Part shown: positions 10,205-39,576 of the stretch, in pieces
Layout of the letters: every line of letters begins with the position of its first letter
Position numbering within the stretch: position 1 is the stretch's first letter
Source of the DNA: Callorhinchus milii
Lineage: Eukaryota
Assembly: GCF_018977255.1 (NCBI RefSeq)
Contig: NW_024704746.1
Span: forward strand, 4,960,001 to 5,024,000
Direction: 5' to 3'
DNA: 64,000 nt
Translations under genes and position numbers: made by a program
The notes under the pieces: model-generated
The model's input: only the letters and a program-made list of their open reading frames with translations
Database searches by the model: none
What the model was told of the DNA's origin: nothing

Positions 10205-10215
10205 TTTATTTTATT
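10205..10215 (-). terminator. Tandem AATAAA polyadenylation signal of Ig kappa cluster 1
   Basis: TTTATTTTATT on the plus strand, ~350 nt downstream of the C stop; conserved in cluster 2 at 43280-43290. Confidence 0.65.
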
Positions 10216-10893: not shown

Positions 10894-10944
10894 CTGTGGG
10901 ACACAGCAACACGTTCGATTCACATCAGACACCGATAGGTCAAT

Positions 10945-13583: not shown

Positions 13584-13618
13584 TCAGAACCAATTCTGTT
13601 CCTTTACCAAACGTGTTC
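13584..13618 (-). CDS. IGKJ: Ig kappa J segment, cluster 1 (NTFGKGTELVL)
   Basis: FGxGT motif, GTGAGT donor in phase 1, adjacent 23-RSS. Confidence 0.93.
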
Positions 13619-13657
13619 CACAGTGTTACATTACAATGATCCGCCCGTACAATATCT
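13619..13657 (+). promoter_or_regulatory. 23-spacer recombination signal sequence of J1
   Basis: CACAGTG (13619-13625) + 23 nt + ACAATATCT (13649-13657). Confidence 0.88.
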
Positions 13658-14818
13658 CAGCCTCCTCCTCCCCCACTGACTGCCCCCCCTCCCCTCTTCC
13701 CCACACACACTGCATTGGGGAAACACACAGCCTGCTCACTAGGATTTATTTAATAATAAAATAATAAACCGTGCACCTGATATCTCGCCTTTCACATGGG
13801 GAGGGCGTCTCACAGAGCTTAATAAGATATATTGTAGAGTGTAGTGACTGTGTAAGTGAACGCAGCAGCCAATTGGTGCACAGCAGCGTCCCACAAACAA
13901 ACATTAAGTGAATCCAAACATTCTCAAAAATCCATCAATTTCATATCTGGCAAAAATATTGTCCATTAAAGTGTATAAAAGTGCTCAAGCCTCTTAATGT
14001 AGATAGTTCCCGTCGCAGGAGCATTAGCAATGCATGAAATTTCACCTGGTCTCAGCCTCAGAATTCTTTATTTTAGCCACTGCTAAAACTAACTTCTCGA
14101 TCTCCCTGCCTCAATCCCTCCACCTCATCCCCTCTTTATCCATCTTTAATCACATTTTAATACCCAGCTCTGCAAGTTGTTGTTGTAATCTGTAATGTGG
14201 AGCAGTGATGGAGAATCCAGTCTGTATTTGAAAGCTGTTTGTTCCCCAGTTTGTTCAAATAAAACTGGCTGCTAAACTCAAACAGACAGACTTTCACAAT
14301 TCTTCCCCTCCGTATGTTCACAATTTGAACAGCAACAACATGAAACAGTGTAGGCAGTGAGAGAAGACAACTGAGCAGTTAGCTCCAGTGGAGGAGCGAG
14401 TAACAATACAGGCTCATGAGGGGAGGTTGGGATCTCTGAGGCTGGAACTACACAAAGCACTTGGTGAAGTGTGTAGGATGTAACTGTGTAACATTCTGTA
14501 TTAAATAACTGTTTTACTAAAAAATTCGAAACTGGTGAAATTAATCTACAACGTGTCCAGTGACAACCAGCAGCTTGGGCTGTTTCTGCCTGTACCTGTA
14601 TAGTGACTGTGTGATGGCTGTGTCTTTGTGTGTGTGTGTGTGTGTGTGTGAATGAGAATATAAGTGTGTGAATGTCAGTGCGTGAACGTGTTTGAGTGTG
14701 CCAATGTGTGTGCGTATGTGTTTGAGTGTGTGAGTGCGTACAATTGTTGAGTGTGAATGAATACGAGTCTATGTGTGAGTCTGTGAGTGTGAGTGTTTGT
14801 GAGCCTATGAATGAGTGA

Positions 14819-14846
14819 GGTTTTTGTAGGGCTGTGTATCACTGTG
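14819..14846 (-). promoter_or_regulatory. 12-spacer RSS of V1
   Basis: Minus strand CACAGTG-ATACACAGCCCT-ACAAAAACC, a perfect consensus; V-12/J-23 is the kappa configuration. Confidence 0.97.
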
Positions 14847-15624
14847 TCGCTAGAGCTCTGGTACCCCATACAATAGTAGTCAGCAAAATCCTCAGGTTGC
14901 ACGCCAGTGATGGTCATTGTGAAAGTAGTGGAGGATTGGTGACCACTGAACCGGGCGGGGGTGCCCGTATAGAGAGTTGTTGCACTGTAAATGAGAAGTT
15001 TGGGACGCTCCCCGGCTTTCTGTTGATACCAGCCAAGGTAGTTGCTGATGCTGCTACTCGCTTTACAGGTGATGGTGGCCGTTTGACCGACAGTCACTGG
15101 CAGCATTGAGGGCGTCTGTGTCATTACAAGCTCACCGCTGACACCTGTGGGGAAGAAAAGCAGGTGATAAACTAACAGCAAAATCTTCCTGTAAAATCAC
15201 AAACCCTGATCCTTACACACTTCATTCCCACCAGCAAAGACACACAGTCTCTAGAGGTTGTGGTTACAACAACAACAACAACAACAAGATTCCACTTATA
15301 GAGCGCCTTTCACGTCAGGAGGACGTCCCAAGGCGCTGCACAGTTGGGTCATGACCCGAGCAGGGGGGAAATGGTCAGGGTGAGGGGAGGGAAGGGAGGG
15401 AGAGAGGAGGGGGAAATGGTCAGGGTGAGGGGAGGGAAGGGAGGGAGCGAGGAGGAGGAAGAGAGTCGAGAGGGGAGCTGAAGGCACGGTCAAAGAGAAA
15501 GAGGCAAAGAGGCACGGTTACTCAGCTAATTCTGCACTGAGAGCGCATGTGAAGCGGGGGAGAGAGAGCGGTTACCAGCGAGCCAGAACACTACAGGCAG
15601 GAGCAGGTGGGTAGAGGACAGCAT
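14847..15624 (-). CDS. IGKV: Ig kappa leader + V segment, cluster 1 (unrearranged)
   Basis: Leader exon 15624..15576 ([16 protein letters not shown]), V exon 15144..14847 (ELVMTQTP...[20 protein letters not shown]...[14 protein letters not shown]); conserved Cys/Trp/Cys; open frame. Confidence 0.96.
15268..15515 (-). mobile_element. Truncated L2/SINE-tail insertion in the V1 leader intron with 6-bp TSD
   Basis: GGTTAC at 15262-15267 and 15516-15521; (TTG)n tail on the minus strand; absent from the homologous cluster-2 intron. Confidence 0.8.
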
Positions 15625-15673
15625 GGTGACCACGTCAGCTCTCACTGTTAATCTGCCGTTCCCTCAGCCACTG

Positions 15674-15711
15674 CTTTATACTTGCAGCCAGGCTCAGGGC
15701 TGTATGCAAAT
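15674..15711 (-). promoter_or_regulatory. Ig V promoter of cluster 1: octamer + TATA
   Basis: ATTTGCAT on the minus strand (15704-15711) and TATAAAG (15674-15680) upstream of the ATG at 15624. Confidence 0.9.
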
Positions 15712-18700
15712 GGCAGCGTATCCCCAGACACAGGGACTGGGCTCCACCCATCCTCTCCTCTCACCCTCCTCTTCACCCTCTTCTCCATTCTTCTCTTTCC
15801 CTCCTCTCCCCTTCTCCTCTTGCTTTGTCTCCTGGATTCTCTCCCATTCCCATTGATGTACCAAACAAGGGGCCAGTGTGAGATTCAATCTGAGCTCATT
15901 GTATAGGGGCGATAATCACACACATGGTCATTATTACAATTAATAATACTCCTTGCGTTTGGTATCGGATTTCACAGCAGGAGGACGGCTGAAAGCACGT
16001 CACAGGATAAAGCTTACTTTACAAGATAAAGTAGTGTTGTAGTGACTGTGTTTTTGTGAGTGATGGCTTTTGGTGCACAGCAAAGGCCCACAAACAGGCA
16101 CCAAGTTTTTTTTTGTTTGCCTTTGGTCAGCCGGCTGTCTGACACACGTGGAAACTCATCACCATGCTTAAGAGATCCAAACCAAACTGAGAATTCCATG
16201 CATCCCATCTACACATTTGGGAGGTTATCGGTCAAGAGACAGGGAGAGACTACATGACAGAATTCCAGAATTCCCCCCCATCGGGCAGCTTCTTAGATGA
16301 TTTCCTGTATCCTGGCTTTGACCACCCTCCCCGGTAACCCTGTCCCTGTCATTAATTCCCCTCCAGGTAATCAGACATGTCCTGAAATTCCGCCCAGTCT
16401 TAGGAAAATCCTGAAATCCAGTCTTGATCTGGAAGGAGGTTTAGTTTTAAGAACCCAGCTCTCAATTCAGACAATGTGACAATTCTCCACAATCTTACCC
16501 TAGTAAAGGCAAAATGGTCTCCCAGGCTAAGACTGGGGGGAATTTCAGGACTCTGCTGTTGCTTCTAAACTTGTTCCTCATGTCCCCGAGCTGTACTAAA
16601 CAGTGACTACTGTGGACAATGGAGTGGATACTGGTCTCAGTTTCTTCCCCTCAGTCTCCCCCTCGCCTTTGGATCACTCACTCTCTCATGCTTGGCCTCT
16701 CACTTCTACCCCTCTATCTCTCGCCCTCCATCCTTGCCTTCTTACCCTCAGTCTGTCTCACTCTCGGTCTCTCCCCCTCAACTCTTGCCTCCGGCCAGCT
16801 GGCTGTGCAGTTATTTACAGATGTGCACCTGCAGTGCTGGCTTCCTGTGTTGCTGTCTGTGTCTTTCCGCTCTGTGAGTTTCTGAGTTATTTTCTGTGTG
16901 GGGGATTTCAGTCTCACTGCTGGAACCTATTAATAACGGTCCCAAGTATCGCAACAACAGCAGGTGAGAACTGTAAGGGCTGAACGCTACCCTCAGTGCT
17001 GTGAGTATAGGGGTAGTGTGGAAAACAACTTTGATGTAGTTACTGACAATATTAATAATTTATGCAATGTAATTATATAAAATGTTATTTATTTAGTTAT
17101 AGGGGTTTCTTATTTAATATATAATATATACATTATATTTTTAAAGTGCAAGTTGCTTAAGCTGGATACATCAGGGCTGGCTGTTTTGTTGGACTTTAAG
17201 CAGTGTCTGAGGGCAACCGAAGTTCCTTTACTTCTTTCCTTCCTGCCCAGCAGAGGAAAGGAAGTGGCAACTCGGAGGTGATTGATAGCTGGCTCCAGGC
17301 TATCAATCAATCACAATTTGACTCCTCCTATTCCCTCCCTTGTTTCTTCCCCGTTCCTCCCCACCTCATTTATTGACCACCCGGCCAGAGCCACTTGTAG
17401 ACTGTGGTAAGGTTTCGGTGGGTTTGAAGCTGTTGAAGGTAGTCGAAGAGGATTTTGAAGGCACGAGACAAAGGGAGTTTGAGAGCAAGTTCCGGAGGGT
17501 GACTAAAGGTTAACAACTGATGGTGGGGCAGAGCGAATGAGAGTAGAGTGGTAATAATAATCCTTACATTTCATATGGCGCCTTTCACATCGGAACTTAC
17601 TGTAAAGTGGAGTGACTGTATTTTATGGACGAATGCGCAGCTAATTTGTGCACAGCAATCTTCCACAATCAGTCATGAAGTGAGTGACTGATTTTATCTG
17701 GGGGGATTGTTGGCCAGGACACCAGGAGAGAGAAACTCCCTTCCTTTTTCCAATAGTGCCATGGGATCTTTAACATCTACCTGAATGGGCAGACGTGACC
17801 TTGGTTTAACATCTCATTCAAAGGAAGGTATCTCTGACAAGGCAGTGCTCCCCCAGTTTTACACTGGAGCATCAGCCTAGAATGTGAGTTCAAATTCCCT
17901 TAGATGGGGCTTGAACCCCCAACCTCTGACTCCGAGACAAGTGACTGAGCCAGACTGATGCTTCCTCAATGTGGGGACCTGGAAGTTGATAGAAATAACC
18001 CGAACACCAGCCCAGCTAACAGCCAACCAGCGACCTGTGTAGCTCAGTGTATTTACTCACGTCAGGACTCGGAACTTACATTTCCAAAGTAGACACTGCA
18101 GTGTAGTGCTGGGGGAGAGGTACATCTGTGGAGGCGCCATCCTTTGGATGAGCAGTGCCTGTACAGCAAAGTGGGGAGAATACAGCAGAGGGACACTGGG
18201 AACTGGGAGGAATGAAACCGTGTCATTTGGGACAATCACGTTTATAATCAAACAAATTACTGGGACTGAGAACATAAGAGTCTGCTGGCGAAAGAAGACC
18301 ACGGTTCATCCAGTTCACCTTCCAACATCCTGGCAGTCGCACGACATGTTATGTCCCAAACTATATATTGTTTTCTAACAGAAAGCTATCTAATTTGTTC
18401 TTGAACAAATCAACACTTTCTGCTTTCACCGTCTCCCTGGGGAGCCTGTTCCATATGTTTACTACTCACTCACCTGAACCAAGAAATTGAATGAAATATA
18501 TCAAGACACAGAGCGAGTTCACAGGACGTGAGAACCAAGAGCCAGAGGTCAAAGACTGGTAACAAGCACTCAGAGGGATCAGACTAGCTGTGAGGCTTCA
18601 GGTTAAGGATTCTCGTTGAGGATCAAACAAAATATTCGCTGAGAAAGCTTCCAGTACATTCTGTACCTGTCTACGAGTGTGCAAGGTTGATGGGGTGGAA

Positions 18701-19299
18701 GAAATACTTCCCAAGAGATTAGTGTCTATTGTTCTGAATTCGCTTTGCTGTCCCCTGATGTGCGAGCCTTTACATTGTTGTCACATTCAATCTGCATTGG
18801 GAGGCACATGGCACAAAATCACCTTAATGTGACTGGCGTGAGATGGATCTCTGGATCTCACTTGCTGGGTAGATGTACTGAGCCACACACACGTCAGGAA
18901 GTCCCATGTCACTGTTGGTTGATCTCACCCTTGTGATGTTCGGGTGGCTTCAGTATACCCACATTGAGGAGTGAATCAGCAGCAGCTTCCTGCTCCTCAT
19001 CACCAGCCAATGCCTCCTGCGGGAAACCAGGTGTGGACAAGAACAGGCTAGTTTGTGATCACAATGTCAATGCTCAGAGGAATGAGTCTATTAGAAGTGC
19101 CCAGGGTCTGAGCTGAGCCAGTGCCCAAGCTGTGCCCAGTGTTGAGCTGTGTCCAGGCTGTGCCCTATGTATAATGTCTGAGCTGTGTACAGTGGCCTCA
19201 GGAGATGAGGAGAATTGCTCTCTTTCAACAAGCTGTAAGTTCATGGTATTGACTCAGGCAAAATCACACCAGAAGTAGGTTTATTTAACAAAATGTATA

Positions 19300-20480
19300 A
19301 GAATAGATGTAATGCATTTAGATTTCCAAAAGGCATTCGAAGATAAAGTATATTTAGTTTTCCAAAAGGCGTATGATAAGGTACCATAAAGTCAGACTGT
19401 GTGGAGTCAGGGGAAAAATAGCAGAATGGAGAGTAAGCTGGCTACAAAACAGAAAATAAGGGTAAAAGGTAGCTACTCAGACTGGCAGGGAGTGGGCATT
19501 GGTATTCCACAAGAAGTGGTATTGTTCACAATATACATTAATGATTTGGACTCGGGAATCAGCAGTACAATTTAAAAATCTGCAAATGACACCAAATTGC
19601 AGGATTAGTTAATACAGGAGGACTGCAACAAATTATAGCGAGACATTAATAAACTTGCTGAATGGGCATTTAAATGACAAATGCATTTTAATGTAGAAAA
19701 GTGTAAGGTGGTACATTTTGGTAGAAGGAATAAGGAAGTCACATACATCCTGGAAAATAAAAACCTAAATGGAGTAGAGGAGTGAAGGTTCCAGGGTTAC
19801 ACATACACAATTCACTAAACATAGGTTAATAAGGCCATAAAAAAGGCAAACCAGGCATTGGGGTTCATCTCTAGAGGGATAGAAATGAAAAGCAGGGCAG
19901 TTATGGTAAATTTCTGTATAACCTTGGTTAGACCACACTTAGAATATTGTGTGCAGTTCTGATCCCCACATTACAGAAGGGATGTAGAGGCACTGGAGAG
20001 GGTACAAAGGAGATTCACAAGGACGATCCCAGAACTGAGAGGTTATAACTATCAGGAAAGGCTGAAAATGGTTGGACTCTTCTCTATTGAAAAGAGGATA
20101 AGGGATGACCTAATGGAGGTCTTTAAAATTATGAAAGGTTTGGATAGGGCAGACATAGGGAAGATGTTTTCACTTGTGGGAGAGACCAAAACCAGGGGTC
20201 ATCAACATAAAATAGTCACAAATAGATCAAATAGGGAAGTCGGAAGAAATGTCTTCACACAGAGAGTAGTGGGAATGTGGAACATGCCACAAGGAGTTGT
20301 TGAGACAAATAGCATACACGTATTTAAGGGAAAGATAGATAGGTACATGAGGGAGAAAGGAATAGAAGGTTATGTTGATAGGCTTAGTTGAGAAAGGGCA
20401 GGAGGCGGCTCATGTGGAGCATAAACACCGGCATAGACCAGTTGAGCCGAATGTCCTGTTTCTGTGCTGTATATTCTGTG
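19300..20480 (+). mobile_element. CR1 LINE 3' portion (degenerate RT C-terminus + 3' UTR)
   Basis: LDFQKAF-like motif at ~19320, [12 protein letters not shown] at ~19925, ORF 20068..20391 (TRGHQHK...FTQRVV), CR1-type 3' end. Confidence 0.9.
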
Positions 20481-21831
20481 CTGCTAATAGAATATCTAAA
20501 ACACGAAGCACACAATGTAACTATGCATTTGACATTGTGCTTTATCATGTCATGGAGATGTCTCAAAATGCTTCCCTCACCACCAGTGCCACCCCCTTCC
20601 TCTCCCCCACAGTGCCAGCCCTTCCCATTCACCCCCTGTGCCAGCCCCTCACCTCCAGTGCCAGCCCTTCCTCCTCAGCCCCACCCCAAAGAATACATTT
20701 AGGTAGGTTTCCCCGAGCCTTACAACTTTCTCAAACAAAGCCACAACCTGTGATTCCCCCAGTCCTCAAAAGAACGGAATCCAGCCCGTTCCTTCTCCAG
20801 TGCATCTGATACACATCTAGTGACTACCCAAAGCGCCTCTGATATCAATGAGATTCCTCAGCAGTTCTTGGTCTCACTATGGTCATCCGAGAGAGACCAA
20901 AGTGTGGATAGATATCACAATATCCTGGCCACAAACAGCCTTCCTGTTAACTCAGATTCCACCTGTTGAATTTCTTCTGTGTAAAGAAATACTTCTTGGT
21001 GCCTGTGCTAAACTCTCCCCCTGCACACCTGTGATCTCATGTACTGAAAGCAATGAAGGTTTCAGTGCTTCCATCGTTAGAGTGGTCTCCCGCAAACAAC
21101 TGCAGGTTTCGCTGCCCAGTTACAGGTAAACATAGTAATGGCAGAATCAAATATCGGGAATTTCAGGGAGGGCAATTTCCCCTCTTCCCTGATTAAATTA
21201 AAATCTATTGATTGATTTTAAAAACGCCTCATATCAGCTGAATTACAAAAATAAATCTACCCGCCACCCATTGACTCCATTATATAAAATATACGGACTG
21301 AAGGAAAGCATCATGAGGGATAATTACATTATCCTGGAGAACAAGACTCCACATTTTCACCCATTGTCAGCCTGAGAACATTTTGTCTTAAAAATCTTGA
21401 CTTCCGAAACAGGCTGAGGCTAGGTAGAATTTCAGGCCTCAGATCCACAGCAAAACACTACAAATCACTTACAGACAAGGGTCAGATTACAGGCGAGGGT
21501 CAGATTACATCTCATTCTTTCAGAATCCTAACCCCACCGTCTGTCCATTACAGCATCGAGACATTTCTTAAATCAGTTCAATGCCCTGGTCTCAGACCCC
21601 TCCTTGGCTACCTTTCACTCTTCTTGTTTTGCGCAGTCTCCTGATCCTCTCCGTCATTTGCCCCTCGCTCCCTCCCCCCCCACCCCGCTATTCTCTTGCT
21701 GTTGTCCCATTGTTGCTTGGCACCCAGCTCTGCTCATCACACGCAAATTGCCCTTCAATAACAAACCGCATTTATATAGCGCCTTTCACGTCAGGAGGAT
21801 GTCCCAAGGCACTCTTGATAGGAGCTGGCCT

Positions 21832-24800
21832 CTAGTCTTTCAGAAAGCGTCTCTCCCATTCAGTGGACCTCAAGGCATTGTAGACCCACAAGGTGAAGTC
21901 AGGAAACATCCCCAAGAAATATTCTTCTGGCGTTCCAACTTTCTCCTGTATCCTAAAGAAGAAAAAAAACATATTAAGCCCAATATGTTCTTCCTTCCTT
22001 AGGCCCTATTAAAAATCCTTTGACACTATTGGAAAAGAGAAGGGGACTTTCTCCTGATGTCCTGGCCAGCAATCCCCCAGATAAATTGGTCACTCATTTC
22101 ATGACTGCTTGTGGGATCTCGCTGAGTGGATGAGTGAATGACCTGTGTCTGTGCAGTGATGTTCCACGATTCTATAAGGTGCTATAAAAGATACAACAAT
22201 ATGGGATTAGGCAGATAACTCAGCTCCAACAACTTATATGCATTTATACAGCACTCTTCACATGGGAAAGTGTCTCGGAGGGCTGGCTCCAAGGGTCAAA
22301 TGGCCTCTTTCTGTGCTGTAATTTCTCTGTCTGACTGAATCTCATTGAGGCCTAATCTGCGCTTGGCCGAGTTGAGTATTGTATGAGTACAGGAAGTGGT
22401 ACAAACTGGCATCAGTCACATACTCTTTGGACTTCTCTCCCAAATGCTCTGTCAGGTTTCGTATGAGCCTCAGCAGATCGCAGGGTGTGTTTTTGAACTT
22501 TGTCTTTGAGTTCTTCTGCGGTTTCTTTTGTGCTCCCATGATCATGCAATTCAGAACTTCTTCATCAATCTGAGGGGAAAGGAAAAAGAGATGTTAAGTT
22601 TGAGTCACTGCTCTAGATTTCTATGCTTCTACTGCAATCCAAGTCCAATCTCCCCCATAGACCACCCACAGAATCTTCACCAGACCTAACCAAATAGGCG
22701 TGCGTGCATTAGATACGAACACACAGAACCAGAAAAGGACATTGTTCTCCACCTTCCATTTCTATTGAGTTGGACGGCTGTAGAGTTTGTCTTAGCGTAA
22801 CATATGTTAGGGGTAGTTGGTGTAACTTTACATAAAATGTTATGCAAAAATGAAGATATGTGTGCTTTGAAGAGTTCAATTGGTTCAGAAGCAATGTGTT
22901 TATCGCAGCTCTCATTAGTTATTGATGTAACTGCATTGTTTTAATCAGAATCAGCTCATGGATGCCAAACTAAAGGACACTCCCAGCTTGTTTAAACCAA
23001 CCAGAAAACTATCAGAAAACTACGGCTCGAGACACTCGACCATTCCAAGGTTCCAGCAACATCGGAAAAGGAAAAAAGCAAAAGAAGAAGAACTGCAACG
23101 ATACAAGAACACAGCTGGAACACAACAGCTAGACATTCAACTTTGATGCCCGTTATTACCAGCTCAACACAGCGGTTACTACTCCCACTGGCCGCTTCCC
23201 AGGATCAGAGAATTAATTCCGCTACCAGCTGTACTACTGGCTGTTCCTGCCATGCAAGAGATATTCACCTACTGCTTATGAACTCGGATATGGTCATTAC
23301 AGTAACATTGTGATAAGTCAGCATAACAGCAAATTTTGTTTGTTGTAACCCTGTCTATTGTAACTATGTTACTGAATTAATGCAACTTTTCTGCCTATTA
23401 AGTAAATGTGCTTTAAAACATAATACACAAGTGACTTTGGTTCCTCTGTTCATGGGCTCCTAATATAACATTTCGGCTAACAGAATAAGCTTTTTCCAGC
23501 CACACTTTTTCAACAGTCTTCAACAGAGTGGTTAATTCCACCTGCTATACCTTTGAACCCAATAGTGTTTCCTGATCTCTGCCAATGCCAATGTCAACCT
23601 CCTTGGCTCACGCTAGCTTGTACCTTGATCTAACCCCAATCCACACAGCCGGCTCTCCTCTCCCTCCCCACCTAGATCAAGAGTAGCTGAAGACTAACTT
23701 CATAAGACAGGAACAAATTGTGAAAGGCCATTCAGCCCATTAGGCAGTGCTTTCCAGTGTGCACAGTAGCTAGCCTCTCATGGAGTCCACTCAGTCCCTG
23801 CTTAGACCAAGACTGCTTTTCTTTCCCTCAACCACATTGCCTCCTCCGTTACCTCACTCGAAACACCACCAAAACCCTTATCCACACTTTCGTCGCTTTC
23901 AGCCCGGACTTTTCTAACGCTCTCCTTACTGATCCCGAGCTCCACAATCCATTAACTTCAACTCATCCACATTCTCACCAAACCCCACACACCCATCCCC
24001 CAGTCTTTGCCAGACTCTCAGCAGATTCTCATCTCTAGTTTGCTCCACACCCTTGCACCTCCCATCTCTCCAATTAGGTAAACAGGATGAGTCCCACCAG
24101 GGAGAGACCGTGCATTCCATACACAGGGATATTTCCCTGTGTAGGTGGCACATGTGGAATTCTCAGCCAGGCTGGGCTGTTCTGTAATCAGCAGTACATT
24201 GGAGTACTACAGACCAGCCTGGCTCAGGAACCGGACTAAGACCATCAGAGGATTGACTTGATTCCAACATTCCGTTGCTAAGCATGTCATCTTGGAGCCA
24301 GTTCAGCTCCAAGGAGGTCCCATGTTTACCACCCCCACTGGAGGACAATCATCAGTTGCTCACTTGATATTGAACAAGCACAGGTTTCAGCTCTCACAAG
24401 GTGGAACTTCCTTCGAGCTTCCTTGTTGGGCAACACAACTCAGCATGAAATACATGAGAGCATTGCCACAGCTCGGACACACATATCATCCCATTGAGCG
24501 ATATCATCTGATCAAAGAAAACCGAATTATGAAAAACAGACCTTTTCTGTCCAAGTATAGAAGGTCTTTTGTTCATCCACCTTGTCATTGAGACACAAGG
24601 TGATGGGAGTGTCTTCTTTGCGAGTTCGTACATCCTCCTCATTAGCCACTTTGTGGAGAAACCCGATCTTTCTGGAGTAACAAACAAAATACCATTACTT
24701 TAGACAATGTCAGCAATATATAGTTCAAAGGACACTATTCCTCCCCTTACCGACCCCTCACCATCCACCCTCCCCAGGCTGACTTACTCTGCTGGTTTCC

Positions 24801-27800
24801 AGAGGAATGGGTGCTGTTTGACATCACTGATGGTAGCTCGTTCTGCTGCTGGTGCCAACAGCCACTCGATCAGATGTCTGGCCTCTGCAGAAAGTAGCTC
24901 CTCCTCCAAAGATGGCCTATTACAGGCTACGTCTGCTGGGCTGCTGTAGGCATCCTTTCCTCCAGTCACCATATAGTGTAAAAGCCGTCCCAATGCCTGG
25001 AGGAAGAAGAAAAGCACTTGTGTACAAATGTATGGTTATTATATGTGCTTCAGGCTGGCAATTCTTACACGTTTGCGGCACAGTTGAACAAGCTACCAAA
25101 GAGAAGAGATACGACCAATGGAACTGTAACAATGAGTGAGGAACTGCATCAAGGGGATAAGATTGGGGAAGGAACTGCTTTAGTTGTGCACAGTAAATGC
25201 AAACAGGTTATGTTTCCCATCACCTTGGCACTAAATGTACCTTTCACAACAACAACAAAAGTGAAGACTGGTGACATACTTTAGAGTTGCGCAAAACAAA
25301 CCTGTAAATCTGCCCTAAAAAGCTCATCTTCAGTAAATGTCACAGGGGGTGATTCTTTCATCTTCTGCAAGACCTCAGAGGCCTCCCAAGTACCTTCTGA
25401 TTCTAACACCACATTCTTATTCTCATCGAAATGGACACTCGAGTCAAAATCCGCCAGACAAATCCGCTCTCCAACATCTGTAAAACCATAACAATATGGT
25501 TCATCCTGTTTATCACAGTTGGGTTATTGGACGTATAGGCAATCGACTTTTTAAAAATAAATTGAAGAGAAATTGCAAATACCGTAATGTATTATTTTTA
25601 GAGGCAACAAATTGGAGCTGACAATGAATTGTGTACAACAACAACTTGCATTTATATAGCGTCCTTCACGCCGGACGGCGTCTCGGAGCGCTCTTGGACA
25701 CAGCTCTGCTTGTGGGGCGCTACTTAAATGCAAGTTATTGTTCTTGAAGCATTTGAACGATTCTTCCTCATAGCTATGACCCTTTAGTTTTGGTTAAAAA
25801 AAATTGAACCAACTTAAAAAGTACACGTATGCGTTAAATCAGTTGATACTCCAAACAACTGCGTTCGAACAGTATTTTGCTTTTGCTTTCTTCGTTCTTT
25901 ATATGCAGCAACAATTTTTACATATAATTATGAGTAATCAATTTGGTAGCTTACTGCCAAGGGAATTCCTTGGGATATTCTAGCTGAAGACAATTTCTAT
26001 ATATTTTCTTGCATTATTTGAGAAAAAAATGTAACTGGAATTTTTCCATCTAATTTTGGATACAATCTAGAATCTTTGAACAAAAACAAAAAATAGGAGG
26101 CTCTGGTTACTATTTTAAGGAACTTAAAATGTAGACAAAGCAGAGCAGAACTGGAACCAAGAACATAGATTCAACCCTGTTGATCAACTCACAGATTTGA
26201 ACTGAATTAACTGAACAGGATTGATACAGATGAACAGGAGAACACTGGTAAAACAGAAACAATTTAATGCTTAATCACAGAAAGAACCCAAATACAGAAC
26301 CGGTTCTGGAGAGCAGAGTGAGTAAACTGAATGGGGGGGAATATTCATTGATTTAATTCTTTCAGCCAGAAGGGGCTGACGAAATGGAGATTGGTTTGAA
26401 ATTTCCCCTTGATCTGAAGATCATCATCTTAAAATGTAAGAATTTTCATTTCTTATTACACTAATCAAGGTACTCCCCACGGTTCATGTGTGAGCCTGAC
26501 CACTCCCCATCTACTGCAACACATGTGCTCTACTAGTAGAAGGTCCTATAGAGGGATAAGGATGGCCAAATTAGCCTCTTTTGAGACAAGCAAACAGCAC
26601 ACATTGGGATGTGACATAGCGAGCTCCCAATCCACATGTTGTGGCTCTCTCCACTGCACCATCAGGACTGCCTCACAATCTCAGATTTTAAAATGAAAAC
26701 AGGTAAGAGTTTTAAACCTCAACAACTATTCTTGCAGTTTGTCCATTAAACATTCAGAAAGCTTTGCCTGCGACAGCTTTGACATTAGTGGGACATCTTT
26801 AGGATGATGGTCAGAAAGAATGGTTTCACGCAAAGTTGGGAGTCCAGCAAAGCAGCTGAGAATTAATAATAAATAATAATAATTCTTGCATTTGATATAG
26901 CACTTTTCACTCTTACCCGTTTTCATTTTAAAATCTGAGCTTGTGAGGCAGCCCTGATGGTGCAGTGGAGAGCCACAACAAGTGGATTGGGGGCTCGCTA
27001 TGTCACGTCTCAGTCTATGCTGTTTGCGTGTCTCAAAAGAGACTAATCTAGCCCACCCTTGCCCCTCCATGGGACCCTCTACTGGTGGAGCACATGTGTT
27101 GCATTAGATGGAATTGAAGGCAATGCTATAAGTTTGAAGATATAATGAAAATCACCTTTCAGGACATGAGTTGGATGCAAATTCCGATGGGCAAATTTAG
27201 CTCCATGCAAAATCTCAAGAGCCTTGATCAACTCTTTCATTACATTCGGTGCTTTCTCTTTGATTTCCTCGGGATTCTGTTCTACCAATTCCTGCAGGTT
27301 ATACTCATAAATCTGCAGGCAAATATATTCGCATTGTGAGTCAGTTTCATGATGAATGTATCGTACAAACTGGCTGTGCGAGACGATCTGTTGGTGTAAG
27401 AGGACACACATTTCTCTGCGCGCTTCTTCACTGTCCTTCCGGAAGCATTTCACAGCTACTTCAGTTTCCTCATTCAAGAAACCCAAGTAGACAAATTCTT
27501 TCATTCTATAAGCCTCCAACCTGGACAGATTTAGCTTCCCGATGGGCAATGGGTGCACGTTCCTCAGAAGCTTCAGTTGTTCATGCCAACGTTGACTCCG
27601 CACTTTCCATCTTTTAGGTGATACATCTTTGTTTCCCCGCAAATCTTCATATTTCCTCAATAACGTTTGCATATCTAGGTTGTATTTTCGCCTGGCCACA
27701 CTGGCTGGTGTGTCTCCTGACTTGTTGATGCAGTTTACATCTGCTCCTTTATCACACAGTAGTTTAGCCATCGCTAGGTCATCCACCTCCACTGCTGCCA

Positions 27801-28785
27801 GAAGGGCCGTTTCTCCCTTATTATTTTTTGCATTGACGTTGATGTTTTCGTCTTTCAGGAAAAGCTTGACCAAGTCCTTTTTTTTCTTTTTTACAGCAAG
27901 AATCAATGGGGTACTTTCAGCTTCCTCACAGACATTTAGGTCTGGCCTGTGTTCCATCAACAGCTTCACCAGACTGGTATTCACTGTATCTTTCTTTAAT
28001 GCAGTGTATATGGGCGTGCCGTAGTTTTTGTCCACATGGCTAACATCAGCATCACGATCCAACAGAATTGTCACAATTGTCTCATTGTCCTCCTCCAAGG
28101 CATACATTAATGGAGTTCGGCCAAGGTTGTCCTGGGCATCGACTTCAGCTTCCATCTCATCCAACAAGATGACGACAATATCTTCATGCCCTTTACGCAC
28201 AGCATCAATCAGAGCTGTCTTTCCACCTTTTCCTAACGTCTTTGTTTCCTCATTCACTTCTCGGTGTTTGTTCACCTCAGCCTTGTTCTTAAAAAGAAAG
28301 CGTAAAGCCTCCTCTTTACCATACTGGGCAGCTTCCATGAATGCGGTAAAACCAAAGCTGTCTGCCTCATTGATATCTACTTCCAGGTCGAGAAAGGTTT
28401 GGAGCAACTTGACATTACCAACTATGGCAGCAACAATGAATGGTGTAGCTCCATTTAGTTTCTTGATTTGCGGATTGGCTCCATATTTCAATAATAAATG
28501 GACAATGTTCTCATGATTTGATTTTACAGCACTTAGCAAAGGCGACCAGCCAAAGCCCTCCATCTTATAGTCGACATCTGCTTTGCTCCTCAAGAGTAAT
28601 TCAACAAGATCTTCATAGCCATGTGACACGGCATATAATAATGGAGTTTCGAGCCCAGACACATTGTAATCCACTGGTGCACCCTCTTGAAGTAATCTTT
28701 TTGCTTCATCAAGATCAGGATTGGGAGAATTACAAAGGTCTTGAAGTTTTTTGCCAAGATTTTCCCGATCCGTATTTTCTACCAT
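21832..28785 (-). CDS. RNASEL: 2-5A-dependent ribonuclease L (ankyrin repeats, pseudokinase, KEN RNase), 803 aa
   Basis: complement(join(21832..21952,22424..22569,24542..24671,24788..24996,25302..25477,27156..28785)), 2412 nt, all GT-AG and in phase; motifs GWSPL, KKLNGATPF, GFTAFMEAAQYG, KGGKTALIDA, VAVK, LADFD, HPFLW, DLLRLIRNLTEH, EYFLGMFPDF match RNase L; intron positions match the human gene as I recall it. Confidence 0.96.
26508..27110. repeat. ~200-bp imperfect inverted repeat (arms 26508-26710 and 26909-27110) inside the first coding intron of RNASEL
   Basis: Arm A ...CTCAGATTTTAAAATGAAAACAGGTAAGAGT is the reverse complement of arm B ACTCTTACCCGTTTTCATTTTAAAATCTGAG...; homology extends to GCAACACATGTGCTC. 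Confidence 0.85.
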
Positions 28786-29869: not shown

Positions 29870-30560
29870 AGTGATCTTGCCCATGTTGTGCATCTCCAGA
29901 ACATTACTCGTGAAGGATTTGGTATCAGTTTTGTCACCACCTTGGACATTCCCAAATCATTTGATAAGATCTTGCACAGGGCATTTCTGAACAATGTTAC
30001 CTTCACATTGTCTCCCACCAAAACCTTATTCTTGTTTTTTTTTCTCTTAAATCACTGAATCACTGGTTATGGTTAATAGTTCATGTTTTAGCTCTTCATC
30101 GACAACTTGGAGGTTCACAAAGACTTTCTACTCTATCACTTCTTCCTTTTCCACTCCAATGACTTCATCCATTTACTAAACAAACTTGTTCATTCTGATG
30201 ACTCAGTTCAATTTAGCAACTTCCTTTAGATGACGTGTACTGTTGCAGTCCTCTCACAGTGCAAGGGCTGAATCACTACCTTGCCGATTGATTAGGGAGG
30301 GAGAGGGTGAAAATCTTGTTTTGTTTTCAGAAACAGTTTCTTCGTGCCTCTCACAAGTCCACCAACAGCGACTGATTCTTATCATTGACTCCACTCCTAG
30401 TCCTTCTTCTAGTGACATTCTTGGCCTCACACTTTCTTGGGATTTCAACAGGGACTCTCACATCTTTTTCATTGTTAAAATACCACCACCAAGAATCTTG
30501 ATTTCCTCTATTAATGCCACTTGGATTCCCTCTCAATAACTCTTGATTCTCTGTAACACC
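29870..30560 (+). mobile_element. Degenerate non-LTR retrotransposon RT fragment
   Basis: TLDIPKSFDKILH resembles the ALDISKAFDKVWH RT motif; multiple stops and frameshifts. Confidence 0.6.
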
Positions 30561-32199: not shown

Positions 32200-33560
32200 C
32201 CAAAATGAAGCAGATTAACGTTGGGGGCGGCGGCCGCTCCCTCCCTCTCTCTCTCCTTCCTTCCTTCCCCAGGAAACAGCTCTTAAAAGCCCGCCCCGGG
32301 CTCCGCCGGCACAGCCGCCCCTCCCCTCCCTCCCCGCCGCCGGCTTCTCGTGACATATTAATTAATCTATATATAAAAAAATAAATGAATCAGAAACCGA
32401 AACGAAGCCGTTTGCGGAGGTGGCGGGAGGGAGGGCGAGCGGGAGCCCCGCGACATGGCGTCGACATGGCGGCCGCCGCCGCCGGCGCGCGCGCGCGGCC
32501 ACGTCCGTTAAAACCGTTTTTTTTTTAAAAAAAAAGCCGTTTGTGAGTCCGTTTTTAGAGAAAAAAAGACGCTTCAAACCGTTGGTCCCTCACAAAAAGG
32601 GCTAAACAGCACCAACTTCTCCCTCACTCATTGCCAATCCTCGGGTTATAAATAGCGACAGAAAAGCCAAATCTGGTTGTTTTTTTTCTGATTATTTTTA
32701 TGTATTTTATTATATTATATTGAGGGAAACTCCAGCCCTCCCCCCCCCCCCCACCTCCCCCCACACCCACCCCCAACCCTTTCTTTCTCCTCAGGGTTTC
32801 TCAGCTTCGGGGCTCGTGAGCTGCGTTTTAGTCGCTTTGATTTATTTAATTTATTTTTAAAATAAAGGTCGTTAGTAAATGTGAGGCTGAGGCGGTGTCT
32901 CGGCTTCCTTTATACCTGCATTTTCTTTGCTCTTTTCTTTCATTTCACTTTTTCTTCTCTCTCTATCTCTCTCTCTCTCTCTCTCTCTATCTCTCCTTTT
33001 CCATTTTTTCCCTAAATAATTAAGATATTAGTCATGTGCGTCTGCTCTGTATTCATCTCCTGGAGGAGGTGCAGTTGTCCCGCAAGTGATGAAAAGTTTT
33101 GATAAATGATTCCACTGATTTTCCCCCCCACACCCACCCCCACACGCCCACCGCCCGCCCGACCGCCCCCAAAGTAGACGTTCCGATGTCTCCCGCAGTT
33201 TATTGTTACCTTCAGCCTCCAATCTGTGTTGCGCAGCGGCGAAGCCGGGTTCGAGGTGAGCTTTCCCACCTGGGACTTGGGGCGTGAAGCAGCGAAGGTC
33301 TGAGTTAGGACGTGGAGTGCGGTGGCGGAGGTTGGATCCGTTTTCTGCGCGGTCGGCCGGGTGCCTTGGCACGCGCCGAAACCCATCGCCGTTGCTTAAG
33401 AGCATCCAAACCAAGCTGAGGATTCCAGGCATCCCACCTACACGTGGAAATCCCGGGGATAGACTGTTGGAATGGAACGCGCACTCTCTCTCCCCGGAGG
33501 GACGCGTATGGCGTCCCTGATTCCGGAGCACATTAGGCGCAGGTCGGCAAGAGCCGAGGC
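32200..33560. promoter_or_regulatory. CpG-rich region, probable RNASEL promoter/5' UTR exons (possibly bidirectional)
   Basis: High CpG density; ISRE-like GAAACCGAAAC 32393-32403; ACATGGCG YY1-like pair at ~32452-32470; minus-strand splice donors at 33209 and 32021; the RNASEL ATG is preceded by an acceptor at ~28798, so a non-coding first exon must lie upstream. Confidence 0.55.
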
Positions 33561-36500
33561 TTAGGGACCCCAGAATGTGGATTGGGGTAACTGCTGGAGT
33601 GTAACCACCTAAAACAGCATAGTTTGCCATTGATATCGCTGTCTGGGAAGCTTTCCCGCTGCTTGTCCAGCCTGGACCACCCTACCCGTTAGGGCTTTGG
33701 GTCCTGCCCATGAGCCGGGCTGGCTGTGCTGTATTAGCTTTCAAAAGGGAACCAGATAAATATCCAAATAACGGAGTCATTTGCAATGTTATGGGGGAAA
33801 GGCAGGTAAATGGGGCTGATTGGATTGTACTTTCAAACAACCAGCACATTCCCAATAGGCCAAACGACCTTCAGTGCTATAAACATCTAAAGTTCTAGCA
33901 AGTGGGACGATGTGAGTTACAGTAAAACAACTTTGTTGCAGTGACTGTGACTACAGCTATTGTGCCGTTGGCATGATTTTAAAAAAAACTATAACAAGAA
34001 GTGATCAAGTATAAATTTTACATTTTTACGTCTTTTGTGTTTTTGGCAGATGGCAGCACAGAATGAAGTGTGTGAAGATATCACTATGGTATGTGGATTT
34101 TTCTCCCGGCGTATCATGGGATGAAAAATCTGATATTTCATAACCAATTATATTAACAAGATTTGTCACTGGTGCATTGGAACATTCATGACACATTGAT
34201 ATTACGATTTGATGCACACCAATGGAGCCAGCTGGCTTTCTGTATGAAGGCGTAGTGAGATCACCACACCCTGTGCATTATTTTATGGACTCTCACCTGC
34301 AACAGCATAACAGGCTTTACTGTACTTTCGGCTTTCAGTGTATCTGCCCACCCCCCCATGTCTGGAACTCCAGCCCAGAGTCCCTTCACTTCGCCATAAC
34401 CATCACCTCCTTCAAGACCCGCCTCAAGACCTTCCTCTTTGGCCACTTTCCTTTGCTCCTCATCCCTCCCACCTCCAGCCTGGGTGCAAACCCTGGACTG
34501 TCCAGCACCATGGGATATCCTCCACATGAAAGGCACTGTAAATTTGTATGTAATTTGTTGCTAATTTCCCTTCAGAGGTATCATTTTTGCCTTGTTTAGA
34601 AGCAGCTTCCAACATGCTGCTGCTAAACCGATTGGAAGTTCCTTTCACGTGTGTGAAAGTGTGCAGATAATCACAGCACAAACACCAGCAAAGAGTCTCT
34701 GCTACTAGGGAACAGTGATCAATATATTTTTATTCATAGTTAAAATATACAACTTAACAATAAGTCTACTGCAGAAAATACTGTAGAAGTTTTATATCAG
34801 GCCCTAAATTACACACAAACTTGCATTCCACAATTGAATTCATATCCAAAAGGAGAGAATCATATACAGTAGTTGTAAAATGAGTGGAATATTACTGAAC
34901 AACTAACTTTAAAATATACTTTTTAAATAATAATGTATAATAATCCTTGCATTGAATACAGCACCTTACCGCATTGTTGAGATGTCTTAAAGCACTTCAC
35001 AGAATATATTGTAAAGTGGAGTGACTATATTTTATGGATAAAACTCAGCATCCAATTATGCACAGCAGTGTCCCACAAAAAATTGTATAAATATAGAGTA
35101 TTTATAGATATATGTATATATATCTATCTAGAAAGAGAAACAGGAAGAACCTTTCTGGTCTAACTGTTTGAGCAGCAGGTTACAAATGATGATGTTTAAA
35201 CAAAATCTGGATTTCACCATGATCTTCACAGTAAACGCTCTGATGTGACCTGCAGCTCACTGGTAATATTAGCAGCCAATGACCAGCTACAGGTTGTCTG
35301 TGTTGTAAATGTTGATGTGTAATTTCACTGTTCACATGTGTGTTTATAGAATATATGAGATATAGTAATAGTACTTTCATCATTTTAGGTTAGGAAGGGC
35401 TCTTTAGCCTGTTGGGCAAAGAGGCCACAAACACGTGGGTCACTGACATGAGGTGCACCACCTAATGTGATGTGAGCAGAAGCAAGCGATCAGAAGAGCC
35501 AGGTAACAGTAAGGTATGTTATGTGGACACTGGGACAAGGAACTTACAAGTTGATCTGCTGGGGCGTAGGGAGCCGGTGGAGCAAGGCGAGGGTGGGGGC
35601 TATGGGTTTGTGGAGCCTACTGCAGGAGAAGATGAAGGATGTAGAGCACCGGATGGGGAGTAGATAAGCAAGTTCTTGTTCTAGAAGAAATTCAGCAGAA
35701 TGATTGAACAACGATTTGAACTGAGATGTTTCCACTGAGATCCCCAAATAGACTGCTGTTGTTGAACTGTGTAAAAATATATATTTTTTATTTGTGGAGA
35801 GGAGGGGATTATGTGCATGGTTATTGAAATACACTCTTCTCCTGTCATTCACTGTCCTGAATCAAATGCTTGGGTGACTGACTCCCAAATTGTAGCCAGA
35901 GCCATCGAAAATCCTTCTGTCTCTGAGGAAGTGCTCGACTCACCTTAGACCAGAAAGTACAGGGGAACAGCATGCTGGGGGCTCATCACACCATTTCAAC
36001 TGGAGGGGCAGTTTATGTACAGTATTGCCATACACCAGGTGCTAAGTTGCAGGTGGAAGCCGTGCACTGGAGGATACAAATGATGAAAGATTCGGCGGGT
36101 GGGAAGACGTTGTTTGTACGGGGTCCTGCTTGCCTTCCCCTCAGCTCGGGAGGGAATTCTTGACAGACTGCAGCAACTGGCAGCATTACTTCCACTCCCC
36201 GCACATTAAGCTGCTGTAATGAGAGAACGATTCGCCGGGGAGAGAGGGAACAGGCGCTCTGAAGTTGGAAATACTTCTTGGGCTGGATGAACTCATCCCT
36301 CAAGCTGAATGTGGCCCGTGGGCCGACAGTTGGTCCACGCTGCCTTAGATGATGCGAACTCAAGTCCTGACATGGGATTTGAACACAAAACCTTCTGATT
36401 CAGGGATGAGAATATTACCACTAAACCAAGCTGACACGCAACACACTATATGTAGGAAATATAAATGTAATATACATTTATTAAATAGGAAAACCCTATA

Positions 36501-38091
36501 ATTAAATAAATAACCTTCCACCATTAGATGGCATAAATAATTATTAACATTAACTGTAACTCTAAATAGGTTTACATCAGTTGTTTTCCACATCATACTT
36601 GTAGTCACAGCACTGAGGGTAGCGTTCAGCCCTGACAGTTCTCACCTGCTGTTATTGCAACACTTGGGACCGTTATTAAAAGGTTCCAGCAGTGAGACTG
36701 AAATACCCCACAGAAAATAACCCAGAAACTCGAGAGCGGAAAGACAGACAGCAAGACAGGAAGCTAGCACAGCAGATGTACATCTGAAAATAACCACACA
36801 GCCAGCTGGCCGGAGGCAAGAGGCCGAGGGGGAGAAATGGGGTGAGACAGACTGAGACTGAGCGTGGAGGGCGAGAGTCAGTGGGGGAGAGTGAGAGACC
36901 AAGGGTGAGGTAGAGGCTGAATGATAAGGGTTTAGTGCAAGAGATTGAGGGGGATAGACTGAAACTCCATTGTCCACAGTAGCCACTGTCTGGTACAGTC
37001 GGGGTCACAGCTCAGAGACATGAGGAACAAGTTTAGCACCAACAGCAGAGTCCTGAAATTCCCCCCAATCTTAGCCTGGGAGACCATTTGCCTTTACAAG
37101 GTATACGATTGTGGAGAATTGTCACATTGTCTGAATTGAGAGCTGGGTTCTTAAAACAAAACCTCCTTCGAGATCAAGACTGGATTTCAGGATTTTCCTA
37201 AGACTGGGCGAATTTCAGGACATGTTTGATTATCTAGAGGGGAATTAACATCAGGGACAGGGTTATCAGGGAGAGTCAAGGCTGGGATACTGGGAATCGT
37301 TTAAGAATCTGCCTGATGCTGTGATCGGGCACGGTGGGGGAATTCTGGAATAATAATAGTCGTTATTCTGTCATGTAGAGTCTCCCTGTATCTTGGCCGA
37401 CAATCCCCCAAATAAAATACATCATCACTTCATGCCAGTTTGTGGGATGTTGCTGTATGCAAAAACCCATTACCCACAAAAACAGTCACTGCACTTTATC
37501 TTGTGAAGATAAGCTTTATCCGGTAAAGTGCTTTGAGACGTCCTCCTGATGTGAATCTGATATCAAATGCAAGGATTATTATTAATTATAATAAGGACCA
37601 TATATGTGATTATCACCGCTATACAATGATTCTCAGCCGGGCCCCACGTTTAGTACATCAAGTCGCTGATTACATAAAGCTCTTTATCATCTCCAATCCT
37701 CTCCCTACTTACGGAACATCGGGGCTCCAGTGACTGGGAATAGGAGAAAAGCCAGTGATAATACACAACCACGCAATTGGTTTAGATGAAGGACATCCCT
37801 CCAGAACACTCACCGTCGCACATTATGGTTACATTGACAAGTATTTGTACTAAATGGACAGTGTAGACAGAGTTTTACTCTGTCTCAAACCCATGCTGTG
37901 GCTGACTTGGGAACGTGGACGGACAATAAAGAGGGAGCTTTACTGTGTCTTTAACCCGTGACCTGGGATTATGCCTGTTCTATCCCCTGATATATTAATG
38001 ATATCCCTCATCTTGAACATGAAAAATATTCACTAAATAAAAGGGGTGGGGATGGGTGGAGCCCAGTCCCTGTGTCTGGGGATACGCTGCC

Positions 38092-38129
38092 ATTTGCATA
38101 CAGCCCTGAGCCTGGCTGCAAGTATAAAG
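38092..38129 (+). promoter_or_regulatory. Ig V promoter of cluster 2: octamer + TATA
   Basis: ATTTGCAT 38092-38099, TATAAAG 38123-38129, ATG at 38179. Confidence 0.9.
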
Positions 38130-38178
38130 CAGTGGCTGAGGGAACGGCAGATTAACAGTGAGAGCTGACGTGGTCACC

Positions 38179-38703
38179 ATGCTGTCCTCTACCCACCTGC
38201 TCCTGCCTGTAGTGTTCTGGCTCGCTGGTAACCGCTCTCTCTCCCCCGCTCCACATGCGCTCTCGCTGCAGAATTAGCTGAGTAACCACAACCTCTAGAG
38301 ACTGTGTGTCTTTGCTGGTGGGAATGAAGTGTGTAAGGATCAGGGCTTGTGATTGCACAGGAAGATTTTGCTGTTAGTTTATCATCTGTTTGTCTTTCTT
38401 CCCCACAGGTGTCAGCGGTGAGATTATAATGACACAGACGCCCTCAATGCTGCCAGTGACTGTCGGTCAAACAGCCACCATCACCTGTAAAGCGAGTAGC
38501 AGCATCAGCAAGTACCTTTCCTGGTATCAACAGAAAGCCGGGGATCGTCCCAAACTTCTCATTTACTATGGAACAACTCTCTATACGGGCACCCCCGCCC
38601 GGTTCAGTGGTCACCAATCCTCCACTACTTTTACAATGACCATCACTGGCGTGCAACCTGAGGATTTTGCTGACTACTACTGTATGCAGAGCTATAGCAA
38701 CCC
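38179..38703 (+). CDS. IGKV: Ig kappa leader + V segment, cluster 2 (unrearranged)
   Basis: Leader 38179..38227, V exon 38409..38703 (EIIMTQTP...[17 protein letters not shown]...[10 protein letters not shown]); open frame. Confidence 0.96.
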
Positions 38704-38731
38704 CACAGTGATACACAGCCCTACAAAAACC
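38704..38731 (+). promoter_or_regulatory. 12-spacer RSS of V2
   Basis: CACAGTG-ATACACAGCCCT-ACAAAAACC, a perfect consensus. Confidence 0.97.
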
Positions 38732-39502
38732 TCACACACACTGCTTCCTGCCTTCACACACACTCACTCATAGGCTCACAAACTCTCACACAGACTCACT
38801 CGTATTTATTCACACTTAACAATTATAGCTCACTCAAACTCAACATTTATAGATATACACACACACTCAAAACATATTCACACACACTCACACAACACAC
38901 AAATGCACACTTGCTCTGACAAACACACAGACAGCCATCACACAGTCCCGATACAGGTACAGGCAGAAACAGCCCAAGCTGCTGGTTGCTATAATGTTGT
39001 CACGACATGTTTCACCAGTTTCGAATTTCCTAGTAAAACAGTTATTTAACATAGAACGTTACACAGTTACATCCTACACACTTCACCAAGTGCTTTATGT
39101 AATTCCACCTCCCCCCCCCCTCACTGCCTACAAGGTTTCATATTGTTGCTCTTCAAATCATCAACTTACGAAGGGGGATAATTGTGGAAGCCCTTTAACC
39201 CAATCTAAGTTTTGAAGTTGGTTTCGTTTGAAGAAACGGGGAAAAAAAAATTCAGAATGGATTTTCCATCACTGCTCCACCTTAATACAACAACTTGTAT
39301 TTTTCCAGTGCCCTTCATATAGGTTAGCGTATTTCACCTACAAATACACAGTCACTACACTTTACAATATATCCTGTGAGATGTCCTCCCCGTGTGAAAG
39401 GCGAGGATTATTTTATTAAACCTTGGTAAGCAGGCTGTACATTTCCCCAGTACAGTATGTGTGTGTGGGGAAGGGGGCAGTCAATGGGGGAGGATGAGGC
39501 TG

Positions 39503-39541
39503 AGATATTGCACAGACGGCACATTGTAATGTAATACTGTG
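39503..39541 (-). promoter_or_regulatory. 23-spacer RSS of J2 (non-consensus)
   Basis: Minus strand CACAGTA + 23 nt + GCAATATCT. Confidence 0.8.
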
Positions 39542-39576
39542 GTGGTCGTTCGGCAAAGGAACAAAATTGGTTCTGA
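39542..39576 (+). CDS. IGKJ: Ig kappa J segment, cluster 2 (WSFGKGTKLVL)
   Basis: FGxGT motif, GTGAGT donor at 39577 in phase 1. Confidence 0.93.

Follow-up and report, generated by a model that had tools for sequence, protein, structure and literature searches.

Can V-J joining in a cartilaginous fish pass from one light chain cluster to another? The question is raised by a 64 kb stretch of the genome of Callorhinchus milii (elephant shark) (hereafter the window, meaning the whole stretch of DNA that was analyzed), in which two intact kappa-type miniclusters, each composed of variable (V), joining (J) and constant (C) segments, lie head-to-head and flank RNASEL, the gene for 2-5A-dependent ribonuclease. 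A preliminary description of this DNA proposed that the two clusters form a combinatorial and editable light chain switch, in which joining between clusters would invert RNASEL. Judged by the arrangement of the recombination signal sequences (RSSs), cross-cluster inversional joining is mechanistically allowed. The locus itself probably consists of two autonomous, ordinary kappa-type VL-JL-CL miniclusters that were placed head-to-head by an inverted segmental duplication, each joining its own V and J. The present evidence is that of a permissive geometry and two ordinary kappa clusters, and not of a working switch or a new mechanism. No prior publication on the C. milii head-to-head kappa pair was found in a literature search that was incomplete, and one may exist.

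The two clusters and their signal sequences

Cluster 1 lies on the minus strand. Its V1 promoter octamer, ATTTGCAT (15711→15704, with TATAAAG), is followed by a leader exon (15624→15576) and by V1 exon 2 (15144→14847), which was identified by translation and tblastn as a V-set domain with the complementarity-determining regions (CDRs) NYLG, SATT and MGYQSSS. The V1 12-RSS (14846→14819) reads CACAGTG, 12 bp and ACAAAAACC, and is a perfect consensus (16/16). The J1 23-RSS (13619-13657) is composed of CACAGTG, a 23 bp spacer and the nonamer ACAATATCT (6/9), for a score of 13/16, and precedes the J1 coding segment NTFGKGTELVL with its GTGAGT splice donor (13618→13584; sequence reading and motif scan). 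The kappa-type C1 exon, including its stop codon, occupies 10893→10568 (tblastn and open reading frame). The V1 leader intron carries an insertion of approximately 250 bp (15268-15515) that is missing from V2 and contains a duplicated G-rich unit of approximately 50 bp along with an (AAC)n run.

Cluster 2 repeats this order on the plus strand, with the V2 promoter octamer at 38092-38099, the leader exon at 38179-38227 and V2 exon 2 at 38409-38703, the last recognized by translation (CDRs KYLS, YGTT and MQSYSNP) and by Pfam (V-set, E=8.7e-16). The V2 12-RSS (38704-38731) is again a perfect consensus (16/16). The J2 23-RSS (39503-39541; 11/16) combines the nonamer AGATATTGC (5/9), a 23 bp spacer and the heptamer TACTGTG (6/7); these correspond to the heptamer CACAGTA and the nonamer GCAATATCT. 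The J2 coding segment WSFGKGTKLVL and its GTGAGT splice donor follow at 39542-39576 (sequence reading and motif scan), and the kappa-type C2 exon at 42604-42929 (Pfam C1-set, E=1.6e-21). The coordinates previously given for all of these elements were each upheld by sequence reading, translation, tblastn and RSS scans.

Each cluster thus combines single V, J (FGXG and a splice donor) and C (C1-set) exons, all of the same polarity and within a few kb, and these are the only V and C exons, two of each kind, that tblastn finds in the window. Both V genes have a split leader and, in translation, the conserved Cys/Trp/Cys framework (...TC...WYQQ...YYC), and both clusters show the kappa arrangement, in which the V carries the RSS with a 12 bp spacer and the J that with a 23 bp spacer. 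The 106 bp preceding the ATG are identical between the clusters, as are the V1 and V2 12-RSSs (28/28 bp). The V exons match at 278/301 nt (~92%), the J segments at 28/35 nt and the C exons at 325/326 nt, where a single residue changes from N to D in HFFP[N/D]TLQL. The nearest relatives are shark proteins annotated as "immunoglobulin kappa light chain-like" and a nurse shark chain (NS4/type III), at 52-58% identity, while C. milii chains derived from complementary DNA (cDNA) of paralogous clusters are 96-99% identical. The predicted J-C splice product, ...LVL-N-RDVAKP, is present in cDNA-derived proteins of C. milii. A further match to the kappa C, at 56-58% identity, is the 133-aa "immunoglobulin domain-containing protein, partial" P0162 from a 990 bp contig of a Salmonella enterica assembly; with this likeness, it almost certainly represents contaminating vertebrate DNA.

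When RSSs are scored as matches to consensus over 16 positions (heptamer and nonamer) and the window is scanned, the only sites reaching 16/16 are those of V1 and V2. The J1 RSS is among four sites scoring at least 13/16 with a 23 bp spacer, and 47 other sites with this spacer reach the level of the J2 RSS. Owing to this many background sites, the J2 RSS is recognizable only by its adjacency to a J exon (FGKG and splice donor) and by its likeness to the J1 RSS (33/39). Both J RSSs are weak, and that of J2 is the weakest of the four. The C. milii J nonamers are degenerate (AGATATTGT in J1, AGATATTGC in J2), in contrast to those of the bamboo shark and catshark kappa clusters (loci L002, L005 and L006), where the nonamer is a near-perfect AGTTTTTGT or GGTTTTTGT; the spacer is 23 bp throughout. 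The J-C intron also contains a 19 bp tandem repeat, ACACACACACAGCAGTGAC (11073-11309, and approximately 42350-42550 in the partner arm), in which exact CACAGTG heptamers and an AC-rich nonamer-like sequence recur at a spacing of 23 bp (11153 and 42426) or 13 bp (11199). The 23 bp-spaced sites point the same way as the J RSS, and the group recalls the intronic recombining heptamers of mammalian Igk. As real RSSs these three sites were rejected, since they belong to an (AC)n-rich 19 bp repeat, score merely 13/16 and are probably due to chance.

Self-blastn shows that the two miniclusters make up the two arms of an inverted duplication of approximately 7.6 kb, the left arm (9456..17140) pairing with 44047-36457 and the right arm spanning 36457..44047. 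The V genes are 23 kb apart. Identity between the arms is a mosaic: it is 97.8% over the 1.7 kb, mostly non-coding, around the C exon (9456-11135 versus 44047-42353) and 98.7% over the promoter and leader (15516-15753 versus 38287-38050), with 90-94% in the J-C intron, 85% over the V, 80-82% in the upstream part and 77-79% in the surroundings of the J. With blocks of 97.8% and 98.7% set among others of 77-85%, this pattern suggests that the arms have undergone gene conversion with each other. The near-identical 1.7 kb inverted repeats around the C exons lie 31 kb apart; a germline inversion by homologous recombination between them is possible, and would bring each V-J unit as a whole to the other C exon.

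The unduplicated centre between the arms, approximately 19 kb in length, holds RNASEL, whose coding region runs on the minus strand from 28785 to 21835 as located by tblastn with V9K7E5_CALMI. Six segments are matched (approximately 28785-27157, 25484-25302, 25002-24745, 24676-24539, 22590-22423 and 21951-21835). The first exon, an open reading frame of 568 aa (27079-28785, minus strand), encodes ankyrin repeats and a kinase-like domain (Pfam); its identity to C. milii V9K7E5 was reported as 100% and is 99.8% by tblastn. The domain set of RNase L (N-terminal ankyrin repeats, a kinase-like domain and a C-terminal KEN/ribonuclease domain) is accounted for by the ankyrin and Pkinase domains of this exon, along with PF06479 as precomputed on the full-length protein P0001.

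Inversional geometry and its simulated products

Within each cluster the two RSSs are convergent, 1,214 bp apart in cluster 1 and 824 bp in cluster 2, with V-J spacers of 1,161 and 771 bp, respectively. Between clusters, the RSSs of V1 and J2 share one orientation, as do those of J1 and V2, at distances of 24.7 and 25.1 kb. Both cross pairs are therefore compatible under the 12/23 rule and inversional, as the preliminary description had claimed. This compatibility is an automatic consequence of duplicating a V-J-C unit in inverted orientation. In the bamboo shark Chiloscyllium punctatum, two kappa clusters encoding the same protein are likewise oppositely oriented, at a distance of 4 Mb, and the special feature of the C. 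milii pair is only the short distance.

Both inversion routes were simulated in silico with flush joins. In the first, inversion of 14847-39541 joins V1 to J2 flush and in frame, the V1 promoter moving with V1, and leaves at 14846 a heptamer-to-heptamer signal joint with the predicted sequence GGTTTTTGTAGGGCTGTGTATCACTGTG|CACAGTATTACATTACAATGTGCCGTCTGTGCAATATCT. This puts V2 on the minus strand, in a deletional arrangement with J1 at a distance of 2,066 bp; the second join, V2 to J1, is also in frame, and removes only a 2,066 bp circle while V1-J2-C2 is unaffected. The two-step outcome that had been proposed, an inversion followed by a deletional join, is thus reproduced. So is the symmetric route, in which inversion of 13619-38703 joins V2 to J1 in frame, leaves V1 facing J2 and yields the predicted signal joint AGATATTGTACGGGCGGATCATTGTAATGTAACACTGTG|CACAGTGATACACAGCCCTACAAAAACC. 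The coding exons of RNASEL lie wholly within either inverted segment and are intact after the simulated flip, in agreement with the proposal that joining would invert this gene without deleting it. A search of the window for a germline relic of inter-cluster inversion, in the form of a heptamer-to-heptamer signal joint, gave nothing beyond chance (one match with two mismatches, at 23755, where 0.41 are expected).

In-cluster and cross-cluster joining weighed

Each cluster would most likely delete its own V-J interval of 0.8-1.2 kb, as described for all cartilaginous-fish clusters, with cross-cluster joins as at most a rare by-product, estimated at below a few per cent of the joins from both clusters. 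In-cluster joining should be favored because its partners are convergent and approximately 1 kb away, as against approximately 25 kb and non-convergent between clusters. In the mouse, RAG that scans from a recombination centre based at a J takes convergent RSSs only, and inversional Igk joins are attributed to diffusion and to RSSs that are unusually strong in both partners (PMC11153149). That rearrangement in cartilaginous fish is held to be (almost) exclusively intra-cluster, as had been asserted for this locus, agrees with the reviews consulted (PMC3014032, PMC5192425, PMC4279169), which credit the large distances between clusters and their shared polarity for this rule. How often joining is in-cluster relative to cross-cluster is here inferred; cross-joins are expected to be infrequent, and are not expected to have a switching or editing function.

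The architecture bears directly on the claim that the locus is editable or translocon-like, and this claim fails. A secondary join that replaces the first would require a spare upstream V and downstream J, which the locus does not have; with one J per C, a second join can neither delete nor invert the first. Because each cluster has a single J, the locus could not perform receptor editing as the term is usually understood, and each chromosome offers two joining attempts, whether these are made in-cluster or cross-cluster. The proposed two-by-two combinatorial set is borne out as geometry, but the gain in diversity would be small, since the V exons are ~92% identical (278/301 nt), the J segments match at 28/35 nt and C1 and C2 are distinguished by one residue. 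Extensive junctional variation is already seen in cDNA-derived C. milii kappa chains. For the functional proposal as a whole, the geometry, coordinates, 12/23 logic and preservation of RNASEL stand, whereas editing does not.

Expressed chains were sought by searching 5.8 billion proteins with the V1-J1-C1 chain, then with J2-C2 alone for shorter fragments, and aligning the C. milii members. The public C. milii kappa set obtained in this way comprises 11 cDNA-derived chains and three Ensembl gene models. None of the 11 chains carries the V1 marker set (NYLG, SATT and ...SSSD) or the V2 marker set (KYLS, DRPK, YYGTT and MQSYSNP), and neither the J2 motif FGKGTK nor the C2 Asp occurs in any of them, all being from other kappa clusters. 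Their J is the J1-type FGKGTELVL in ten cases and FGKGTQLVL in one, with the C1-type Asn in all 11. The search with J2-C2 alone returned no shorter fragments from C. milii. Being derived from other clusters, these chains neither show nor exclude V-J hybrids. Since they share J1/C1-type sequence without either V marker set, the C. milii genome must contain further kappa clusters of this type. The chains themselves (P0121, P0165-P0176) have mosaic V markers (ELVM/EIIM, NYLS/KYLS, DATT/RATT/SATT) and end their CDR3 in ...SSSNP; the CDR3 varies in length and contains apparent non-templated residues, which together imply, as read from these proteins, several more near-identical kappa clusters in C. 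milii and junctional diversification of its kappa chains. The Ensembl model P0148 reads through into the 3′ flank of V2, but has HTATT in CDR2 where V2 has YYGTT, and so represents an allele or a paralogue.

Several points weigh against autonomous clusters that each join only their own V and J. The low frequency assigned to cross-joins is an expectation for these two clusters, not a measurement. Both V 12-RSSs are perfect, and at 23 kb the C. milii pair is far closer than shark immunoglobulin heavy chain clusters (>80-200 kb; PMC5192425), as well as closer than the four sampled elasmobranch kappa clusters, which are solitary within +/-10 kb. In zebrafish, inversional joins between immunoglobulin light chain (IgL) clusters do occur over 81 kb (PMC3014032). 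It is also plausible that a single cell activates both clusters, because their promoters are identical and head-to-head.

These points could be taken further, to a locus in which inversional V1-J2 and V2-J1 joins are regular, the full two-by-two set is assembled and the 24.7-25.1 kb segment with RNASEL is flipped in a substantial share of the B cells. The flush, in-frame products obtained in silico, the perfect and identical V RSSs, the short distance of approximately 25 kb and the zebrafish precedent (PMC3014032) all speak for such regular use, as does the routine use of inversional V genes at mouse Igk. Nevertheless, we regard it as distinctly unlikely given the strong competition from convergent partners approximately 1 kb away, the weakness of the J RSSs (that of J2 above all), the absence of J2 and C2 from public C. 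milii light chain proteins and the minimal gain in diversity, and its editing component is excluded by the single-J architecture. That cross-cluster joins are detectable at all is a lesser demand, and is possible, if rather doubtful.

Were such joining to occur, RAG-mediated V-J joining across two clusters by inversion would be known for the first time from a cartilaginous fish. The genes V1-J2-C2, V2-J1-C1 or both would be present in some of the B cells, together with a signal joint kept in the chromosome and an inverted segment of approximately 25 kb in which RNASEL is intact. The within-cluster-only rule would be broken, and cluster autonomy would be set by distance and orientation rather than by an intrinsic barrier. 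The C. milii pair, 23 kb apart, of opposite polarity and in the holocephalan reference species, is suited to testing this rule because both usual explanations for cluster autonomy, distance and shared polarity, are removed; a negative outcome would favor an active mechanism of autonomy.

A further reading, which departs from two autonomous and functional clusters in the other direction, is that cluster 2 is a silent or poorly recombining, decaying duplicate, with J2 essentially unused and V2 to J1 as the sole possible cross-join. The J2 RSS is the weakest of the four (heptamer CACAGTA, nonamer 5/9), FGKGTK and the C2 Asp are found in 0/11 cDNA-derived chains, and no shorter fragments with J2 or C2 features were recovered. 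Yet cluster 2 is intact in all its coding parts and splice sites as well as in its promoter and V RSS, its promoter is the same as that of cluster 1, and the count of 0/11 is weak evidence because several other kappa clusters exist and V1 is likewise unrepresented; we therefore hold a silent cluster 2 to be improbable. Least credible of all, and rejected, is an assembly artefact in the form of a false palindrome with one real cluster beside RNASEL: inverted false duplications do arise in long-read assemblies and the C regions are 97.8% identical, but the divergence between the arms is 2-23%, with numerous indels, unequal V-J spacers (1,161 versus 771 bp) and the 250 bp V1 intron insertion, the two clusters have different CDRs and J segments, and an independent earlier assembly contains the exact V1 segment (Ensembl models P0167 and P0122) along with a V2-like gene bearing the V2 3′ flank (P0148).

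RNASEL synteny and known light chain systems

Outside 9-44 kb, no other host gene is evident in the window. Many copies of a short interspersed element (SINE) derived from a tRNA are present (158-480, 40044-40416, 40914-41237, 45820-46193, 51418-51616, 54833-55141 and 57628-57799), with four of the heads called as tRNA-Pro or tRNA-Ala by ARAGORN and one copy in each J-C intron region. Fragments of long interspersed elements include an endonuclease-like open reading frame (387-842, minus strand), a C-terminal ORF2 tail (20068-20391, plus strand) and a reverse-transcriptase-like open reading frame (52421-53050, minus strand). A C-rich minisatellite at 2569-3715, with a period of approximately 33 bp, approximately 27 copies and 72% matches, lies in a stretch of 69% G+C.

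The association of RNASEL with kappa genes extends to elasmobranchs in a looser form. In Scyliorhinus canicula (locus L001), the only immunoglobulin exon is a kappa C exon (58029-58259) at the far end of the locus. It lies on the strand opposite to RNASEL and approximately 33 kb beyond the final RNASEL exon that was mapped. In S. torazame, the RNASEL locus (65 kb) contains no immunoglobulin exon, and the kappa clusters are found on the RNASEL chromosome 1.5-2 Mb away, where they are solitary (L004-L006). Data from C. punctatum suggest that RNASEL and kappa clusters share one chromosome there as well. The S. canicula and S. torazame loci led us to reject a conserved head-to-head pair around RNASEL in elasmobranchs; the tight pair is present, among the species sampled, in C. 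milii alone, and an old synteny of RNASEL and IGK in cartilaginous fishes is likely on the basis of these gene positions.

Among known systems, the elasmobranch kappa (type III/NS4) clusters are similar in construction, with a single V, J and C in approximately 5-9 kb, a V 12-RSS, a J 23-RSS and a split leader. The four that were sampled differ in being solitary within +/-10 kb, with clusters hundreds of kb to Mb apart, in contrast to the head-to-head pair 23 kb apart in C. milii. Mammalian Igk shares the V-12/J-23 arrangement and the retention of intervening DNA upon inversion; its many V genes and four to five J segments per C allow a primary VJ to be replaced, which is true editing, whereas C. 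milii has one J per C. Mouse Ig lambda also places two V-J-C units on one chromosome, although these are tandem, much further apart and cross-joined by deletion where the C. milii clusters are inverted. Joins at mouse Ig lambda are overwhelmingly intra-unit, and leapfrog joins between clusters are rare (summarized in PMC3014032).

The closest precedent for the proposed joining is found in the IgL loci of zebrafish (Zimmerman et al. 2008, PMC3014032), and inversional inter-cluster IgL joining is therefore not a new idea. As in C. milii, V-J-C clusters of opposite polarity occupy one chromosome, their RSSs are 12/23-compatible in inversion, and the intervening DNA, which in zebrafish includes immunoglobulin segments, is retained and flipped. 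In zebrafish, unlike in C. milii, hybrid VJ-C transcripts have been cloned, from joins spanning up to 81 kb. The zebrafish clusters contain several V and J segments, making secondary rearrangement possible, whereas those of C. milii contain one of each, and the segment to be flipped in C. milii differs in containing a non-immunoglobulin gene, RNASEL. The zebrafish authors explicitly asked whether inversional inter-cluster joining exists elsewhere (PMC3014032). A positive outcome in C. milii would place this process, shown so far only in zebrafish, in a second, early-diverging lineage of jawed vertebrates.

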